From the NCBI GenBank assembly GCA_033442325.1, contig JAWQFM010000014.1, positions 431,048-494,251 on the forward strand: a stretch of 63,204 nt of DNA, given 5' to 3'. Positions within the stretch are counted from its first letter, which is position 1; every line of letters begins with the position of its first letter. This DNA comes from Salpingoeca rosetta. Lineage: Eukaryota; Protista; Choanoflagellata. The notes below the pieces were generated by a model. The model was not told the origin of the DNA and did no database searches. It saw nothing but the letters and a program-made list of their open reading frames with translations. The position numbers and the translations under genes are program-made. This document shows, piece after piece, positions 978 to 62,037 of the stretch.

Positions 978-1851
978 TTTCGGTGTTTGCGTCTGTTGCG
1001 TAAGCGTCTGAGATTGTTGCAGTGCTGTATGTATGTTGTTGGGGAGGGGAGTAAAACGTGGCCGCCGCGCCTTTGTGTGAGATGTTGGTGTCGTGTAGCG
1101 TTGTGACGGTGGGTTGTGTGTGCGTTCTGGTGCTGTGTGGACCGCTAAGGCCGCCGTGTAGAGGTTGTGGCCACTGACTTGTCAGCTGGGCACTTCCAGG
1201 GTTGGCTGGTCACAACACACAAGCACCGGCGCATTCATGGCCGCTTGTCATTGCGCTGTGCGTCGCCGCACCTTGCACTTGGCAAAGCGTTGTCTTGTGG
1301 GGGTGTTGGGAGTGTTGCTTGGTAGCATGTATGTTGTGCGTTTGTTTGGCAGCTACATTTCGCCGCTCTGCCCGTTGTAGGCGTTGGCACATGGGTTTAC
1401 TTTCTGTTTGCAAAGCTCATCGTCCGTGGGATTGTGATTGTGATTGTGTTGTGCTTGCTTGTTTCCTTGTTTCTCGATTTGGGGCAGCGAGAAAGAAGGC
1501 GGCAAGCAAGCACGACGGAAAAAAGTCATCTAAGCGTCACCTGAAGGGTAATTCTTGTCAAATTTTTATTTGGGCTTGGCGTCCCAACCCAATTGCACTT
1601 CCAAGCACGCAAAAAGGCGTGGAATGACGCCGCGTGCATTCCAATGTCCACGCCCAGGCAAGAATGTAACAAAAGACGCGCCTAAACTGAGGGTTTGACA
1701 CACAGAGACGCACACAGATGCACCATTTACACACATACACTGCGCCGACAACACACGCTCAACGCATACACGCAACTCCAAGCATACAAACGCACACTCA
1801 GGGCCGTCGGCTCCTTCTCCATCGACCAGCAACTAGGGACTGACACGTGCC

Positions 1852-3804
1852 ATGGGCTTGACGGGCTACGGCAGCGTTGCCGGTATTCTGGGCAAGGACT
1901 GGGCGAGCAGGCGCTCCACGATAAGCACGCAAGATCGCGTGTGCGGCGTCGAGCTCCATGGCGTCATCCACAGGTTTCTGTGGAGGCGTGACAGGACATC
2001 ACTACGGCAGCATATGCAGAATCCAGCATGCAACCAGCTGAGCCAGGCGTGCTGTGCCCGAATCACCGGCCGAATCGTGCGACACGTCCAGACTCTCACC
2101 AAGATGTTCCGGCGCGTCATCATCGTCGACGAGACCCCGACGGCGTACAAGCTGCGGGACTCGGGAACCCCAAGCTGCTTGGTGAGACAGCTGCGCGCCG
2201 CCATCGAGCAGAAGACCAGCGCCGAGTTCACAACCGCACCGGGCGAGGCCGACCACCAGCTAGCAGCAATGCTCCGTCGCAAGGTGAGACGTGCACAAAC
2301 AAGCTTCAGCGAGGCTGCACTCGCACCAACGCAGCACCCACACACGCCGCACATGCACACACAGATGAAAAGCATGTTGACACACCCTCACGCCACTCAC
2401 ATTCATGCACACACACACACACGTACGTGCAGGAGATACACGTCGCGCTGTTCCCCTCGTCAGACAGTGACATGCTGCTGCACGACGCAGGGGATGGCAT
2501 CATCGTATTCCGCCACACACTGCAGCGCAAGGCGGGTCGCGTGGGGCTTCGTGGCGTCTGCATTCGCAAACGTCACAAGCTTTGCATGGCAGATGGCATC
2601 GTGGCGATCTTGGCGGGCTGCGATGTCTTCAAACGCGCCGGTTAGTGCATGTCCCAGCACCTGATTTGCAAACTGCGCCTCAATCCACACTCATAGTCAC
2701 ATCAGCAATGTTTATGGTGTGGTCACTGGGTATCAACAAAGAGCAAGTGTCGCATTCTCATCAACAAGCACAACTGCAGGTGTTGCACGGAAGCGGGCGC
2801 AAGCGTTGTTTGAGGCCGCAATGGCGGCGGAGGCGGCCGCTGCTGCCACGGCCGACACCACTACCACCACAGCCACAGCCACAGCTGACACAACCGCCGA
2901 CACCACCGCCGATACCACCGCTGCTGCCACTACCGACACCACCACCGACACCACAGCCACGGCGGCCACCACCGCCGACACCACAGCCCCAGCCCCGCCA
3001 CAGCCAACCGGCTGGGGTTCTGGCCCGCGGTAGCTGCTGTCGACCGGCACATCCGGGCAGACGGCGACTTCATCGCCGGTGCCGTCGCCTTCTTCTGCGG
3101 ACCGGTGCGCCTCGACGGCCGGGAGCAGATGCTGGCGCCGATGCCGGACAACTTCAGCACCCTACGGCCGCCCCTGAACCAGGACAACGACCCACATCAA
3201 CACTGCGTCCCAGGGCGAGCAAGGGTGATGAAGAAGATGAGCAGGCGGACAGGCAAGCGGGTCTTCAGGCGGATCAGCAAGCAGATCCACCCAAGCATGC
3301 AGCTTGCCCAAGAGTCCCCCCGTGTCCCCCAGCGCGTGCAAGAGCGCGAGGCAGGCAAGCAGGTTCAGACCCGAGCGCAGACGAAGGAGCAGGAGAAGCA
3401 GAGGGCGGAGACGCACGTGGCGGGCGGGAAGAAGAAGAAGGATGACAAGGAAAAGAAGAAGAAGAGGAACACGAAGAAGAAGGATACCGCAAGTGTGGAC
3501 GGCGGGGATGATGCCCGCTCGTTCTTCTGGCACGCGGATACAGCTGCAGTTATACCAGAGCCCGCGTCACCAGCAATCCCCGAAGCCAAGGCCGAGACAC
3601 CCGTGCAGCTGCAGCACCAGTGGGGGCTTGTCAGTGTCGTGCCCCATGGCCCCGACACGACGGCACCTTGTCTGTCAGACAAGATCATTGCCGCCCACAA
3701 GAAGCGTCAGGAGAAGAAGGCAAAGGAGAAGGCTGAGAAACGGGCGAAGCAGCAGGCCGCGAAGCAACAACAAGAACAACAAGAACAACAACAACAAGAA
3801 CAAG

Positions 3805-3901
<97 letters not shown>

Positions 3902-3935
3902 GCAGCAGCAGCACCAGCTGCAGCAGCAGCAGTAG
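1852..3935 (+). CDS. FEN1/XPG/Exo1-family (PIN-fold) 5' nuclease with H3TH motif and basic/poly-Q tail; possibly the N-terminal half of a fusion with the downstream Fanzor ORF
   Basis: Exons 1852-2283, 2433-2640 and 2780 onward (introns 2284-2432 and 2641-2779, both GT..AG and frame-consistent). XPG-N/I motifs in order: MGLTGY, VCGVELHGVIHRF, VIIVDETPTAYK, FTTAPGEADHQLAAM, VALFPSSDSDMLL, AILAGCDVFKRA|GVARKRAQALF (H3TH). An apparent frameshift between about 2889 and 3030 leads into ORF 3105-3935 (K-rich NLS-like segments, poly-Q). Confidence 0.8.
3764..3932 (+). repeat. (CAA/CAG)n poly-glutamine tract
   Basis: Long caacaa/cagcag run read in frame as poly-Q in ORF 3105-3935. Confidence 0.95.
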
Positions 3936-4235
3936 AAACAACAACATCAGCAGCTTGCGGCTTCGGCCATTCACAGTCCCACGCGGCACCACATTCCCCA
4001 CCACAAAAAAGGTTAAGTACGCACCATTAATCAAGGAAGGTGGATTTTTTCCTTTAAGGGTTCAACTTCAATTGGTTCTCTTCTATTTTTGCAGAAGAAA
4101 CAATGTTTCTCATGAAGGGGTTTTGATGGTTCCAAACGCAGAACCAGCCGTATTACGGTAACCTTTTGGCGAGGGGGGGACCGGGCGTACGGGTCGCCTG
4201 ATGCCGCCTTTAATCAGCCTCGCTGCCCCCTAACG

Positions 4236-4335
4236 NNNNNNNNNNNNNNNNNNNNNNNNNNNNNNNNNNNNNNNNNNNNNNNNNNNNNNNNNNNNNNNNN
4301 NNNNNNNNNNNNNNNNNNNNNNNNNNNNNNNNNNN
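4236..4335. other. Assembly gap (100 N) with low-quality flanks
   Basis: N run. The sequence at about 3940-4235 loses coding character and looks like a read end. Confidence 0.98.
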
Positions 4336-6655
4336 GAAAGGCAAAGAGCAAGCCGTCGCAGGTGGCACTGTGTGTTCGCCAATCCGGGCCATGACAAGCG
4401 CAGCTGTCGCTAGACGTCACAGAGCAACCCACAGCCACAACAGCAGAAGCAGAAGCAGAAGCATAAGCAGACACAGAAGCAAAAGGCACCCCAGTCGGGG
4501 CAGACACAAAGCTCACCACCACTGCCACCAACTGCCACCACTACCACCACTGCCAGACCTCGCAAAGGCCAGGGCGTCGTTGCTACAGCTGCGCAAGTTG
4601 AATGATGAGTTACAGGCAGCGGTGCGTGAGCGAGACGAGGTACAGAAGGTGGTGGACGACCTCCTCGATCCAGTGGAGCATGACAGGGCCGTGCGCAGCC
4701 TGAAGGACAAGCAGGTGGTGGCTGACACGAAGCACCGCCACTTCCTGCACGCGCTGCAGGCCCTGAAAACAATGCTTCTGAATGAGCTACAGGAGTTTCA
4801 GGCCTGCAGAAGGGCTGCCAAGAGCCGGAAGGAGGCGCTCGCAGAGGAGCACGCGGCCAAGCAGGAGGCGCTCGCAGAGGAGCACGCGGCCAAGCAGGAG
4901 GCGCTCGCAGAGGAGCACGCGGCCAAGCAGGAGGCGCTCGCAGAGGAGCACGCGGCCAAGCAGGAGGCGCTCGCAGAGGAGCACGCGGCCAAGCAGGAGG
5001 CGCTCGCAGAGGAGCACGCGGCCAAGCAGGAGGCGCTCGCAGAGGAGCACGCAGCCAAGCAGGAGGCGCTCGCAGAGGAGCACGCGGCCAAGCAGGAGGC
5101 GCTCGCAGAGGAGCACGCAGCCAAGCAGGAGGCGCTAGAGAAGCACCAACAGCGGGAGGTGGCAGACCTCGAGCAGCGACAAGTACAGGAAATTCGCGAC
5201 TGTACCCTCACCGATGCTTACGCCAGGAAGATAGCGGACGTCCACAGGAGCACATGGTTAATGACGAAGAAGGGCATGGCGGTGTCCTCATGGACCGGGA
5301 GCATCCTGGAGTTTCACACGGCCCTGAAGACACAACAGCAGCGGCAGGAGGAGAACGACACATTCAAGTTCCACATGAGTAGGCAGGCAGCGCGCAACAC
5401 CATCCCCGTGGATGCCGTGAATCTCAAGCAAACGAGGGGCATGTTTGCGGTGATGTGCGTGGACAAGCTCCGTGTAGCAGAGCCGCTACCCGCTGCGAAA
5501 GACTTTCGCGGTCAGGCAAGGTTCACATTGGATGCGTCGGGGAGGTACCACATATGTGTGGCCTCCAACTTCACCCGAGGAGCACCTGATGACGTGGGAA
5601 CGCTCGGGCAAAGCTTGCTCCAGGTTGAGAGACCTGTGCTGGCAGGGTGCGACGACGGCCTGCAAGAGGTGGAGGAGGAGGAAGAGGCACGTGCAAAGTG
5701 CGAGGAACATGGCGGCGGGGACATGGCCATGCAGGCGTTGGAGGAGAAGGCACGTGTGAGGGAGCGGAAGATGGGCGAGGTGGCACGGCGGTTGCAAGCG
5801 GAGGCGAGGGAGGCGCGCAGGCGGTGGGTGAGGCTGAGACGGGCCAAGGCGATAGACAAGCAGACACAGGAAGCAGAGGCAGAGTTTCAGGCAGCACGAG
5901 AGCGACATGCGGCGCACCTGGACTGGCGGCGGCGGCTGCGAAAGCGGCGGCGACTTCTGCGCATGAAGGAGCGCAACGCTCTCCTGCGCGAGAGACGTGG
6001 CGGTGTTGTGTCCATTGACCCAGGCGTCCGCGTGCCATTCACGCTGTGGACGGCGTCTGGGACCGTGTCCATCGCGCATGACGCCATCGAGGAGCTGCGC
6101 ATGCTTCTCAGGAACGCCAATGACATCCGTGCTGATGCCGACCTCCTGGAAGTAGCGGTGCAGGAGGGCGAAGCCCGGGGCGAAGGCGACGTGGCAGCCG
6201 CGCGACGGCGGCACCGGCAGCAGCTGCGCGTGGTGAGGGACCGCGTGGACCACCTTCATCGAGTCGTCGCCAATTATCTTGTGATGTCGTTCCGCGTCGT
6301 GCTGCTGCCGCGCTTCGGCACCAGCCGGATGATCCGCCGGTCCGGTCGCCCGTTTGGCCGCGACACGGCTCGCTCCATGGGCGTCTGGGCACACTACCGC
6401 TTCAGGCAGCTGTTGTTGGACCGCGCGGAGAGGGAGCCTGGGTGCACGGTTGTGATCTGCGATGAGGCGTGGACGTCGAAGACCTGCGGCCGCTGCGGGC
6501 GGCTGCACCACAGCCTCGGCGCTGACGATGTGTTCGCATGCCCCCACGACAGCTGCAGATATGTCGCCGGCCGCGACGCCAACGCAGCCCGCAACATTCT
6601 GTTGCTGTGGCTGTACCGGAACGACATCCAGCTTGCACCGGTGCCAGCTCCTTAG
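4336..6655 (+). CDS. Fanzor2/IS607-TnpB-like RNA-guided endonuclease with long N-terminal coiled-coil extension (open to the gap; true start not visible)
   Basis: WED-like FKFHMSRQ...EPLP...ARFTLDASGRYHICV. RuvC-I VVSIDPGVRVPFT (D codon 6017-6019). HLHRVVANYL. RuvC-II VVLLPRFGTSRMI with the Fanzor-type Pro (6308-6310). WAHYRFRQLL. Relocated catalytic Glu in VICDEAWTSKTC (6464-6466). Zinc finger CGRC...CPHDSC. RuvC-III GRDANAARNILL (D codon 6575-6577). Stop TAG 6653-6655. Confidence 0.92.
4831..5136 (+). repeat. 33-bp coding tandem repeat, 9 full copies plus a partial (EALAEEHAAKQ)
   Basis: Unit ggaggcgctcgcagaggagcacgcggccaagca starts at 4831, 4864, ... 5095, with a partial copy at 5128. Copies are nearly identical (one gcg/gca synonymous variant). 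Confidence 0.97.
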
Positions 6656-6840
6656 CCGCGCACGGGGGAGGGAGGAGTAATCGCCGACACAGCACATGTT
6701 CACACGTCGAGCGATTGGGGCGGGGCAACCAAGAGAAGAGAAGCCGGGAGGCGAACGAGGACGAGGGGAAAGCGGCGTGCACCGGGCAAAGTCCTTCAGC
6801 ACGCACATGCTGCAGCTTGTGCCTGCATGCTGGCTGGACA
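6600..6840 (+). ncRNA. Candidate omegaRNA scaffold of the Fanzor
   Basis: Position at and after the ORF 3' end is where TnpB/Fanzor omegaRNAs are encoded. Visible stems: aatcgc-cgac...gtcg-a-gcgatt (6679-6716) and cagca-c-gcaca...tgtgc-ctgca-tgctg (6797-6832). Boundaries are inferred. Confidence 0.45.
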
Positions 6841-7653
6841 CAGGTGTGTGTGTGAGTGCTTGTGTGTGTGCCTGTGTGTGTGTGTGAATGTGTGCTTGTG
6901 TGTGTGTGTGTGTGCTTGTGTGCTTGTGTGTGCTTGTGTGTGTGTGTGTGTGTGCACGCGTTCATCATCGTCGAGATCTTGCCGAATTTTGTTGAAGGTT
7001 TTCACAAATCTTCCAAACTTGCGATTTTTCGAGGTTGCTGTTGCCAACGATTGTCGACAGCAGAGAACAGACGACCGCGCTCCTTTCTTTCTCTCCTCAC
7101 CTCCTCGAGCTCTCACCCCACTCCCACTCACATACCCCCCCCTCCCCTAACACTCACACAACACACACGACACACCAGCTCGCACGTGTGGCTCGCATGT
7201 GAAGCACCCCTACTATCCCCTTCTTCCTTGTTTTTTTCTCTTTGATCCCACCCCCTCCCTTCCCCCGTTTTACAGGTTGTTGGGTACCTGCTGATCTACT
7301 ACGGTCAGCTTCGTAAAAACCCAAAGGTGAGCGGCTTGACGGCGTGATGTGTGAGTTTGTATGTGTATGTGTGCGTGAATGTGTGTGTGTGTGTGTTTGA
7401 GTGTGTGTGAGTCTGTGTGTGTGTGAGTGTGTGTGAATGTGTGTGTGTGAGTGTATGTGTGAGTGTGTGTGTCAGTGCGTGTGAATGTATGTGCGAGTGT
7501 GTCTGTGTGTGTGTCAGTGCGTATGATGAGTGCGAGTGGATGACACAAGATATGAACCTGAAATGTCAAGCGAAAATATCCCCGCAAGCACTTACACTTC
7601 TTTTGCATTCAACTTCCGTCAACAAAGCGCACCGTCGTGGTTGGCGTACGACA

Positions 7654-26544: not shown

Positions 26545-34318
<7,774 letters not shown>

Positions 34319-58834: not shown

Positions 58835-61878
<3,044 letters not shown>

Positions 61879-62037
61879 ATCCGACTACTACTTGTGCTGT
61901 CGTCCAGAAAATTGGAGGAGGCTTTGCTTGTTGTTTGTTGTGGTGCATTCTTCGTGCTGTTGCCTCGTGTTTTGGTGTGTGTCCTTCCACGTCCCTGCCT
62001 CCACGTCTCCACCTTCTTCTTCATTGAACAGCTTGCG

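Follow-up and report, generated by a model that had tools for sequence, protein, structure and literature searches.

When an RNA-guided nuclease and a 5' nuclease are encoded side by side on the same strand, do they form one system, or did one gene merely come to lie next to the other? The question is raised by a locus of the choanoflagellate Salpingoeca rosetta, in assembly GCA_033442325.1, where a Fanzor nuclease follows an XPG-family nuclease resembling EXO1 and FEN1. The DNA analysed, hereafter the window, covers 63,204 nt of contig JAWQFM010000014.1 (positions 431,048-494,251 of the forward strand; contig C14 below). On sequence comparison, window 1682-7619 is one copy of SAl-1, a Fanzor2 element of S. 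rosetta. The interpretation that we favour, with moderate confidence, is that SAl-1 is a Fanzor2 transposon coding for three things: an EXO1/FEN1-type PIN 5' nuclease in three exons; a basic, polyglutamine (polyQ) linker resembling a nuclear localization signal (NLS); and a Fanzor with an expanded N-terminal half (helix-turn-helix (HTH)-like start, proline-rich repeats, CCHC knuckle and coiled coil) that precedes an intact, rearranged RuvC and a zinc finger. All of these would probably be carried by one polypeptide, and the gap and TAG stop that interrupt it in the window would be assembly defects.

SAl-1 as a repeated mobile element

SAl-1 was previously described by Bao & Jurka in 2013 (PMC3627910 and its supplement) as one of two Fanzor2 families from Salpingoeca sp. 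ATCC 50818. It was classed as a transposable element, with three copies, a 400-aa protein encoded by one exon, and the right end alone defined. That 400-aa protein was identical to window 5450-6655, and the published consensus right end (...CATTCAACTTCCGT) stopped at the same base as the one observed here. The Fanzor2 classification used in this study is that of Bao & Jurka (PMC3627910), the RuvC tree made here having held near homologues only; it agrees with the label 'Fanzor2-type' given in an earlier note on this DNA, which had been written from the letters of the window alone.

A second full copy was found on contig C29 (L051 7068->521). It displayed 91-99% identity to window 1682-7619, reaching 99% in both nuclease parts, and its left and right flanks were both unlike those of the window copy. 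The right end at window 7619 was common to four copies (C14, C29, C27 and C4), beyond which divergence was complete. Likewise, the left end at window 1682 (CTAAACTGAGGGTTTGA) was shared by both copies whose left side was readable, and was preceded by unrelated sequence; the weak resemblance of upstream flanks between copies was no better than that of shuffles. Neither terminal inverted repeats (TIRs) nor a target-site duplication (TSD) was seen at the two left and four right junctions. The full unit measured about 6.5 kb, and the genome was estimated to hold two to five copies of the element. Since both nucleases sit inside one repeated unit whose flanks differ on C29, their coupling is real and not due to chance.

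Two inverted, older fragments, about 84% identical, were also recorded 23 kb apart on contig C33 (C33:191178-191704, L048, and C33:167997-168468, L049). Both were flanked by N runs and covered the middle region only (window 3042-3560), their homology beginning inside a putative 44-nt intron that is discussed below.

Two nucleases within one unit

In the Fanzor half, Pfam Cas12f1-like_TNB (PF07282) matched above its cut-off at E=9.6e-14 (rounded, 1e-13) and 1.3e-14, the C4 zinc finger was intact, and 4965 homologues were retrieved at E<=1e-3 from a representative protein library. The codons of the RuvC triad (D 6017-6019, alternative E 6464-6466 and D 6575-6577) corresponded to invariant or near-invariant columns of the homologue alignment. 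The canonical position of the RuvC-II glutamate reads LLPRF, and the alternative glutamate lies in DEAWTSKTC; a rearranged RuvC site with a displaced RuvC-II glutamate was reported for Fanzors (PMC10530073). The earlier claim of a Fanzor open reading frame (ORF) with intact catalytic motifs was thus borne out by the domain match, the D/E/D codons and the C4 finger. In the reference genome (GCA_000188695.1, scaffold GL832966.1) the Fanzor ORF is PTSG_12268 (XP_004993744.1), identical to the window core. Upstream of this core, the 33-bp tandem repeat of the coiled coil (4830-5136) codes for EALAEEHAAKQ and comprises nine units in the window and seven in C29.

The upstream nuclease became apparent after splicing. 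Of the seven canonical XPG acidic positions six were kept, the first being Glu instead of Asp (codons E 1951-1953, D 2128-2130, E 2245-2247, D 2251-2253, D 2463-2465, D 2469-2471 and D 2622-2624). The N-region motifs MGLTG, GVELHG and IIVDE were recognised by eye. In the spliced protein ILAGCD was followed by the H3TH-like GVARKRA, and the H3TH stretch IVAILAGCDVFK had 9 of 12 residues identical to IAAILAGCDYTK, its counterpart in the XPG protein of contig C2 (see below). An I-region profile was built from seven loci of the S. rosetta genome validated with Pfam XPG_I, together with the gene P0074 described below, and with SAl-1 left out; against it the spliced protein scored 27.1 bits (single-target E=1.3e-10), compared with 6.5 bits for the highest-scoring of 2000 shuffles. 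In tblastn searches with the spliced protein, APGEADHQLAAMLRRK/EIHVALFPSSDSDML aligned over the exon 1/2 junction to four XPG loci (E=2e-5 to 1e-3). Intron 1 is supported by this alignment because the latter spans its splice junction. With in-frame GT-AG introns and this profile score, the spliced PIN/XPG nuclease with acidic motifs that the earlier note had placed upstream of the Fanzor, on the same strand, was confirmed.

Since about 38 residues separate the second and third acidic positions, the helical arch of the SAl-1 XPG nuclease is, judging from its sequence, short and more GEN1-like; the corresponding spacing in FEN1 and EXO1 is about 72 residues. Comparison of ESM features placed exon 1 nearest to XRN_N, Asteroid/XPG_N, FEN1, 5_3_exonuc_N and PIN-like_DDX60, at values (0.83-0.88) below the 0.9 level that serve as leads only. 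No usable match was obtained in the ESM search with exon 2; exon 1 gave chance-level matches alone among PDB sequences (E>=0.17), and nothing except itself in the protein homologue search. The ACC/GCC repeat at 2830-3000 was hypervariable between copies; another of its frames is read in C29, with equal total length.

Between the two halves the window is interrupted by 100 N, and the earlier note had allowed that the gap might be large or a mis-join. In the paralogues the equivalent of the gap was 666 bp in C29 and 579 bp in C27 (C4 was partial), all of it coding, and the order of the two halves was kept on C29. One frame was open across the gap region in C29, C27 and C4, reading ...KKPSTHQRSRKVRIYPSRVQRQWLNTYFAAATEAYNAAV..., proline-rich repeats, an acidic stretch and the CCHC knuckle (CTVCRQSGHDKRSC); in C29 and C27 it was also open through the polyQ. 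The gap is not a mis-join, since these three copies carry continuous open sequence there.

The letters next to the gap were themselves of doubtful quality. Window 3937-4235 displayed 76% identity to C27 with many indels, and both sides of the gap differed from the paralogues by single-base indels and homopolymer changes. A k-mer search of public runs listed none that holds window 3925-4235; for window 5150-7600 it listed 20, of which 11 hold more than half of its words. The TAG at 3933-3935, suspected earlier to be an error, is CAG in both C29 and C27. From this comparison of copies, the letters 3925-4235, the TAG and the nearby frameshifts are most likely read-end or assembly errors. The earlier statement that the Fanzor frame is open back to the gap held in the literal sense, the ORF (frame 2) being open from 6655 back to 4336; but from 4336 to about 4520 it is not the frame of C29, C27 and C4, which encode the CCHC knuckle there, the window having indels.

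This bears on the reference annotation as well. PTSG_12268 (707 aa, window 4391-6655) starts directly after the gap, with about 4415-4560 spliced out. On the evidence of the paralogues its N-terminus is a gap artefact, the Fanzor really starting near window 4010. Pfam HTH_OrfB_IS605 (PF12323) matched the C29 sequence at E=0.0012 (18.7 bits, below the 21-bit cut-off); homologues carry this domain at the same position, at E=1e-9 to 1e-12, and the motif RIYPSRVQRQWLN in the C29 N-terminus resembles homologues P0006 and P0101. A homologue search with the C29 middle region returned nothing except itself, low-complexity words being dominant.

Table 1. Features of the window copy of SAl-1, in window coordinates
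Feature	Position	Strand	Description
SAl-1 copy	1682..7619	+	left end CTAAACTGAGGGTTTGA, right end ...CATTCAACTTCCGT
XPG/EXO1-like exon 1	1852..2283	+	ATG start at 1852, MGLTG; has GVELHG, IIVDE and APGEAD; start coincides with the annotated gene start
Intron 1	2284..2432	+	GTGAGA...GTGCAG, phase 0, 149 nt; spliced junction aligns unbroken to XPG_I regions of other loci
XPG exon 2	2433..2640	+	SSDSD, beginning of ILAGCD (H3TH)
Intron 2	2641..2779	+	GTTAGT...CTGCAG, phase 1, 139 nt; in-frame join gives ...CDVFKRAGVARKRAQ
XPG exon 3	2780..3016	+	continuation of H3TH, then hypervariable ACC/GCC repeat linker
Putative 44-nt intron	3017..3060	+	would join the XPG frame to the long frame; contains the frame-1 stop TAG 3031-3033; identical in C29
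Basic K/E-rich (NLS-like) linker, then polyQ (~3761-3932)	3061..3932	+	in C29 and C27, runs on into the Fanzor frame
TAG stop	3933..3935	+	CAG in C29 and C27
Garbled letters of the Fanzor N-terminus (KVRIYPSRVQRQWLNTYFAAATEAYNAAV, HTH_OrfB_IS605-like)	3936..4235	+	assigned by paralogue comparison
Assembly gap (100 N)	4236..4335	.	real content ~580-670 bp: helical segment, proline-rich repeats, acidic stretch
CCHC zinc knuckle (CTVCRQSGHDKRSC in paralogues), Q/K-rich stretch, PPLPPL stretch	4336..4560	+	window has indels
Coiled coil	4561..5149	+	33-bp tandem repeat
Fanzor core	5150..6655	+	WED/REC with E/R-rich insertion, split RuvC, C4 zinc finger
3' non-coding part	6656..7619	+	(GT)n microsatellite; last ~130 bp conserved in four copies

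Elsewhere in the window, further assembly gaps were present at 29739-29838 and 60517-61092. A drop in GC content at 60001-62000 (0.38) coincides with the second of these, a 576-N gap, and may be an artefact.

One polypeptide or two, and recurrence of the pairing

The earlier note had proposed either one protein of more than 1,300 aa or a two-gene module. From 3061 onward the long frame was supported by the C29 copy, by the reference annotation and by P0074. C29 contains one frame of 983 aa that extends from window-equivalent 3105 and takes in the basic linker, polyQ, TnpB-like N-terminus, knuckle and coiled coil before reaching the WED region; it is broken there by two 1-nt deletions at window-equivalent 5430 and 5444, and the RuvC half is found in the following 401-aa ORF. 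The XPG frame (frame 1) stops at TAG 3031-3033 in both the window and C29, and the open stretch of the long frame (frame 0) begins at 2889. The reference annotation places an upstream gene at 1852-3935, with a 583-aa product. Among all GT-AG options, this length was obtained only with introns 2284-2432, 2641-2779 and 3017-3060; it follows that the annotation links the XPG exons with the long frame, as only the last of these introns reproduces the 583 aa. With paralogue sequence placed in the gap, the fused product would reach about 1,646 aa, and the size suggested earlier was too low.

On these frames, the balance is in favour of XPG nuclease and Fanzor being one polypeptide of about 1,650 aa, read through the putative 44-nt intron. 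A two-protein module, composed of an XPG nuclease of about 299 aa ending at TAG 3031-3033 and a Fanzor of about 1,330 aa starting from an ATG near 3131, co-expressed and acting in trans, is possible but appears the weaker choice. The conservation of the stop in window and C29 would suit it, as would the starting point of the older C33 fragments, whose homology begins at 3042 within the putative intron. A difficulty for the fusion is the intron itself, which at 44 nt is far shorter than its neighbours (149 and 139 nt) and in whose absence the XPG frame would stop at 3031-3033. Yet this stop and the next ATG are only about 100 nt apart, too close for a eukaryotic terminator or promoter to fit between them; the reference annotation also unites both frames, and P0074 presents the fused form as one ORF.

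P0074 (Logan contig SRR20381884_155488, L052, gene 1555-5478) originates from a sequencing run unrelated to the S. rosetta genome and consists of an uninterrupted 1,307-aa ORF. XPG_I was matched at residues 160-202 (E=2.6e-8), OrfB_IS605 and TNB at 1069-1256, and the N- and H3TH motifs were recognisable. Its XPG motifs (MGIRDL..., GEADAM, KDTDHL and VSDYSKG..VGPKRA) are followed by a long linker and then by a TnpB/Fanzor RuvC and zinc finger. P0074 displays the same order of XPG, linker and RuvC/zinc finger as SAl-1, and about 45% identity to it in the RuvC part; it differs by being an intron-free single ORF with a full-length arch region. The surroundings of the gene are compact, with closely spaced genes that lack introns (LRR_6, AAA and unknowns) on both strands. 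When the XPG exons of SAl-1 were compared by BLASTP with the XPG part of P0074, no similarity was detected; a homologue search with the P0074 N-terminus found nothing except itself, and viral contigs yielded 0 loci.

The pairing also recurred within S. rosetta. On contig C2, with a repeat on C7, exons for canonical XPG_N (E=3e-7), XPG_I (E=4.5e-11) and H3TH were located 2-3 kb upstream of a Fanzor TNB (E=7.7e-5), on the same strand and within one repeated unit. The Fanzor of this unit is diverged and, by eye, SAl-2-like. At this locus (C2:2274374-2277907, L054 2875-6408; the C7 repeat is L055) CA-repeat introns separate the exons, and the H3TH segment is tandemly duplicated. At C8:1606397-1610941 and C12:271321-275387 (minus), a Fanzor-like RuvC-I was likewise preceded on the same strand, at a distance of 3-4 kb, by EXO1-like XPG matches. 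On their sequence these two loci probably represent a third XPG-Fanzor family; they look like duplicates of each other. The co-occurrence of the two domains, which the earlier note had suggested looking for, was therefore encountered in P0074 and in two or more further families of S. rosetta (C2/C7 and C8/C12). The S. rosetta genome was further seen to hold at least 14 XPG-family loci, exceeding the usual FEN1/EXO1/XPG/GEN1 set.

No XPG gene was found among the neighbours of the closest Fanzor homologues, and the searchable literature yielded no report of a Fanzor or TnpB joined to an XPG, FEN1 or PIN nuclease. The RuvC tree neither showed nor excluded that the XPG-bearing Fanzors have a single origin.

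Possible role in homing and comparison with known systems

The earlier note saw no transposase, and none was detected here: window 1682-7619 gave no further domain match (no TnpA serine recombinase), and Resolvase (PF00239, the IS607 TnpA domain) had no match in the whole 55-Mb assembly, control genomes being matched. Only some Fanzor2 elements encode a TnpA serine recombinase (PMC3627910). The 3' non-coding part of SAl-1 (6656-7619) is where a guide RNA would be expected, and constitutes the candidate site for it.

How could such an element profit from a nuclease of each kind? Eukaryotic breaks are readily sealed by end-joining unless their 5' strands are resected, and resection is the job of EXO1-type enzymes. 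The benefit of Fanzors to their eukaryotic elements is still open, as end-joining competes with homologous repair. In the scheme proposed here, the SAl-1 protein, once expressed, would act without a transposase: a complex of Fanzor and guide RNA would cut its target (e.g. the empty allele or a flank-specified site), and the attached 5'->3' nuclease would at once resect or process the cut ends. Repair would then be steered from end-joining to homologous recombination with the element-bearing copy, by which the element would be copied or retained. The basic NLS-like linker and the CCHC knuckle would be part of this cutting-and-processing protein, and the short arch may allow other substrates, e.g. 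through a GEN1-like action on branched DNA. Alternatively, the 5' nuclease might serve to degrade the target DNA. A precedent is offered by bacterial TnpB, a homing nuclease that is reported to cut the vacant site with a guide RNA encoded by the transposon, double-strand break-stimulated recombination then retaining the transposon (PMC10055086; 10.1101/2023.11.20.567912). We tentatively suggest that SAl-1 may be a eukaryotic selfish element that does without a transposase and whose single polypeptide combines RNA-guided cutting with 5' resection, forcing its own break into homologous recombination, i.e. a natural, self-contained gene-drive or homing device recurring in several families.

Several observations weigh against this interpretation or against the architecture on which it is built. 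No copy was demonstrably intact: the window has its gap and indels, C29 has the two 1-nt deletions mentioned above and an N gap in exon 1, and N runs interrupt the C27 and C4 copies. Homing alone leaves the spread of the element unexplained, at least four insertions having different, unrelated flanks. As to the guide RNA, the 3' part had no Rfam match, and the folds of 7480-7619 and 6560-6840 were no better than shuffles (z -0.83 and +0.66, respectively). The pairing is rare outside the S. rosetta genome: the XPG_I motif scan gave 0 hits around 80 viral Fanzor-like loci (0.98 Mb) and 0 around 80 metagenomic ones (0.41 Mb); SAl-1 and P0074 were not grouped in the RuvC tree, which was poorly resolved and restricted to near homologues. 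With exons taken singly, Pfam signals for the XPG nuclease were weak (exon 2, XPG_I_2 at E=0.084; exon 1, no match), and six-frame Pfam XPG_N and XPG_I searches of the genome did not list the SAl-1 locus; both are explained by intron 1, which splits the I-region motif. Finally, the AlphaFold single-sequence model of exon 1 alone was all-helical, with a predicted local distance difference test (pLDDT) of 54, and was unusable.

Several of these defects would also be expected of a decaying relic, whose copies are recent duplicates of a now-dead element and in which the pairing no longer serves a function in S. rosetta. A defect or gap does occur in every assembled copy, there are just two to five copies, and substitutions between them were too few to demonstrate purifying selection. 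We nevertheless regard a relic as unlikely: the catalytic residues of both nucleases are all intact, each nuclease part is 99% identical between the copies, the architecture was maintained in three families, and most defects of the window lie in letters held by no listed public run. Still less probable is a domesticated host gene family, for instance an RNA-guided defence or repair function, with the 5' exonuclease acting to degrade the target once it is cut. Host-type introns are present and neither transposase, TIR nor TSD was found, as such a family would have it, but sharp common ends with unrelated flanks at four loci, near-identical copies, and the classification by Bao & Jurka as a transposable element (PMC3627910) argue otherwise. 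Chance adjacency, with a Fanzor inserted beside a host XPG-like gene as the earlier note had also considered, or a mis-join at the gap, could draw, before testing, only on the gap itself and on the weak match of the XPG exons to Pfam, and was rejected as extremely improbable since both nucleases share the same order and spacing on C29, in a repeat unit with distinct flanks and no gap there, and since C27 and C4 bridge the gap region as well.

Taking SAl-1 as a Fanzor2 transposon with its own EXO1/FEN1-type nuclease, the record can be corrected on two points: the element is about 6.5 kb long, and not a fragment coding for a 400-aa protein, and PTSG_12268 is truncated by an assembly gap. Fanzor2, SAl-1 itself, the rearranged RuvC and TnpB homing were already known; the left two thirds of SAl-1, the true N-terminus and the upstream nuclease are newly described here. 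Fanzors are eukaryotic RNA-guided nucleases that are being developed for genome editing. One that carries its own 5' nuclease suggests a natural answer to competition from end-joining, in which the break is resected and would then be repaired by copying; engineers follow a parallel path when they fuse exonucleases to Cas enzymes. As S. rosetta can be cultured, crossed and edited, this hypothesis is directly testable.

Relative to its first description (PMC3627910), in which the left end, the true N-terminus and the XPG nuclease were missing, SAl-1 is now a unit of about 6.5 kb with a predicted product of up to about 1,650 aa. With the viral and IS607-type Fanzor2 elements (mimivirus ApmFz2; PMC10530073, PMC11832414) it has in common a split RuvC with a replaced RuvC-II glutamate, a C4 zinc finger and the absence of TIR and TSD. 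Those proteins, however, are of about 500 aa and some are accompanied by a TnpA serine recombinase (PMC3627910), whereas SAl-1 has no recombinase, large REC insertions and an upstream 5' nuclease. IS607-type transposons likewise lack TIR and TSD, but their TnpA recombinase is not found in SAl-1. In TnpB homing of the IS200/IS605 type (Meers et al., PMC10055086), a transposon-borne RuvC nuclease also makes a cut that stimulates element-restoring recombination. In bacteria, host RecBCD-type enzymes resect and a TnpA transposase moves the element, whereas SAl-1 brings a resection-type nuclease and has no transposase.

Compared with EXO1, FEN1 and GEN1 of the Rad2-XPG family, the SAl-1 nuclease displays the same N-terminal MG..G, acidic residues (EAD, SDSD, GCD) and H3TH-like ILAGCD..G.A.K.A. 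It is distinguished by Glu in place of the first Asp, by its short arch, by its location in a transposon and by its probable fusion to an RNA-guided nuclease. Engineered fusions of Cas9 or Cas12 to exonucleases, in which a 5' nuclease joined to a programmable nuclease biases repair, resemble SAl-1 in this coupling but are artificial. Finally, Academ (AcademX) transposons encode an XPG nuclease together with a DDE transposase and no RNA-guided nuclease; like SAl-1 they are eukaryotic DNA transposons that recruited an XPG domain, and unlike SAl-1 they do so beside a DDE transposase.

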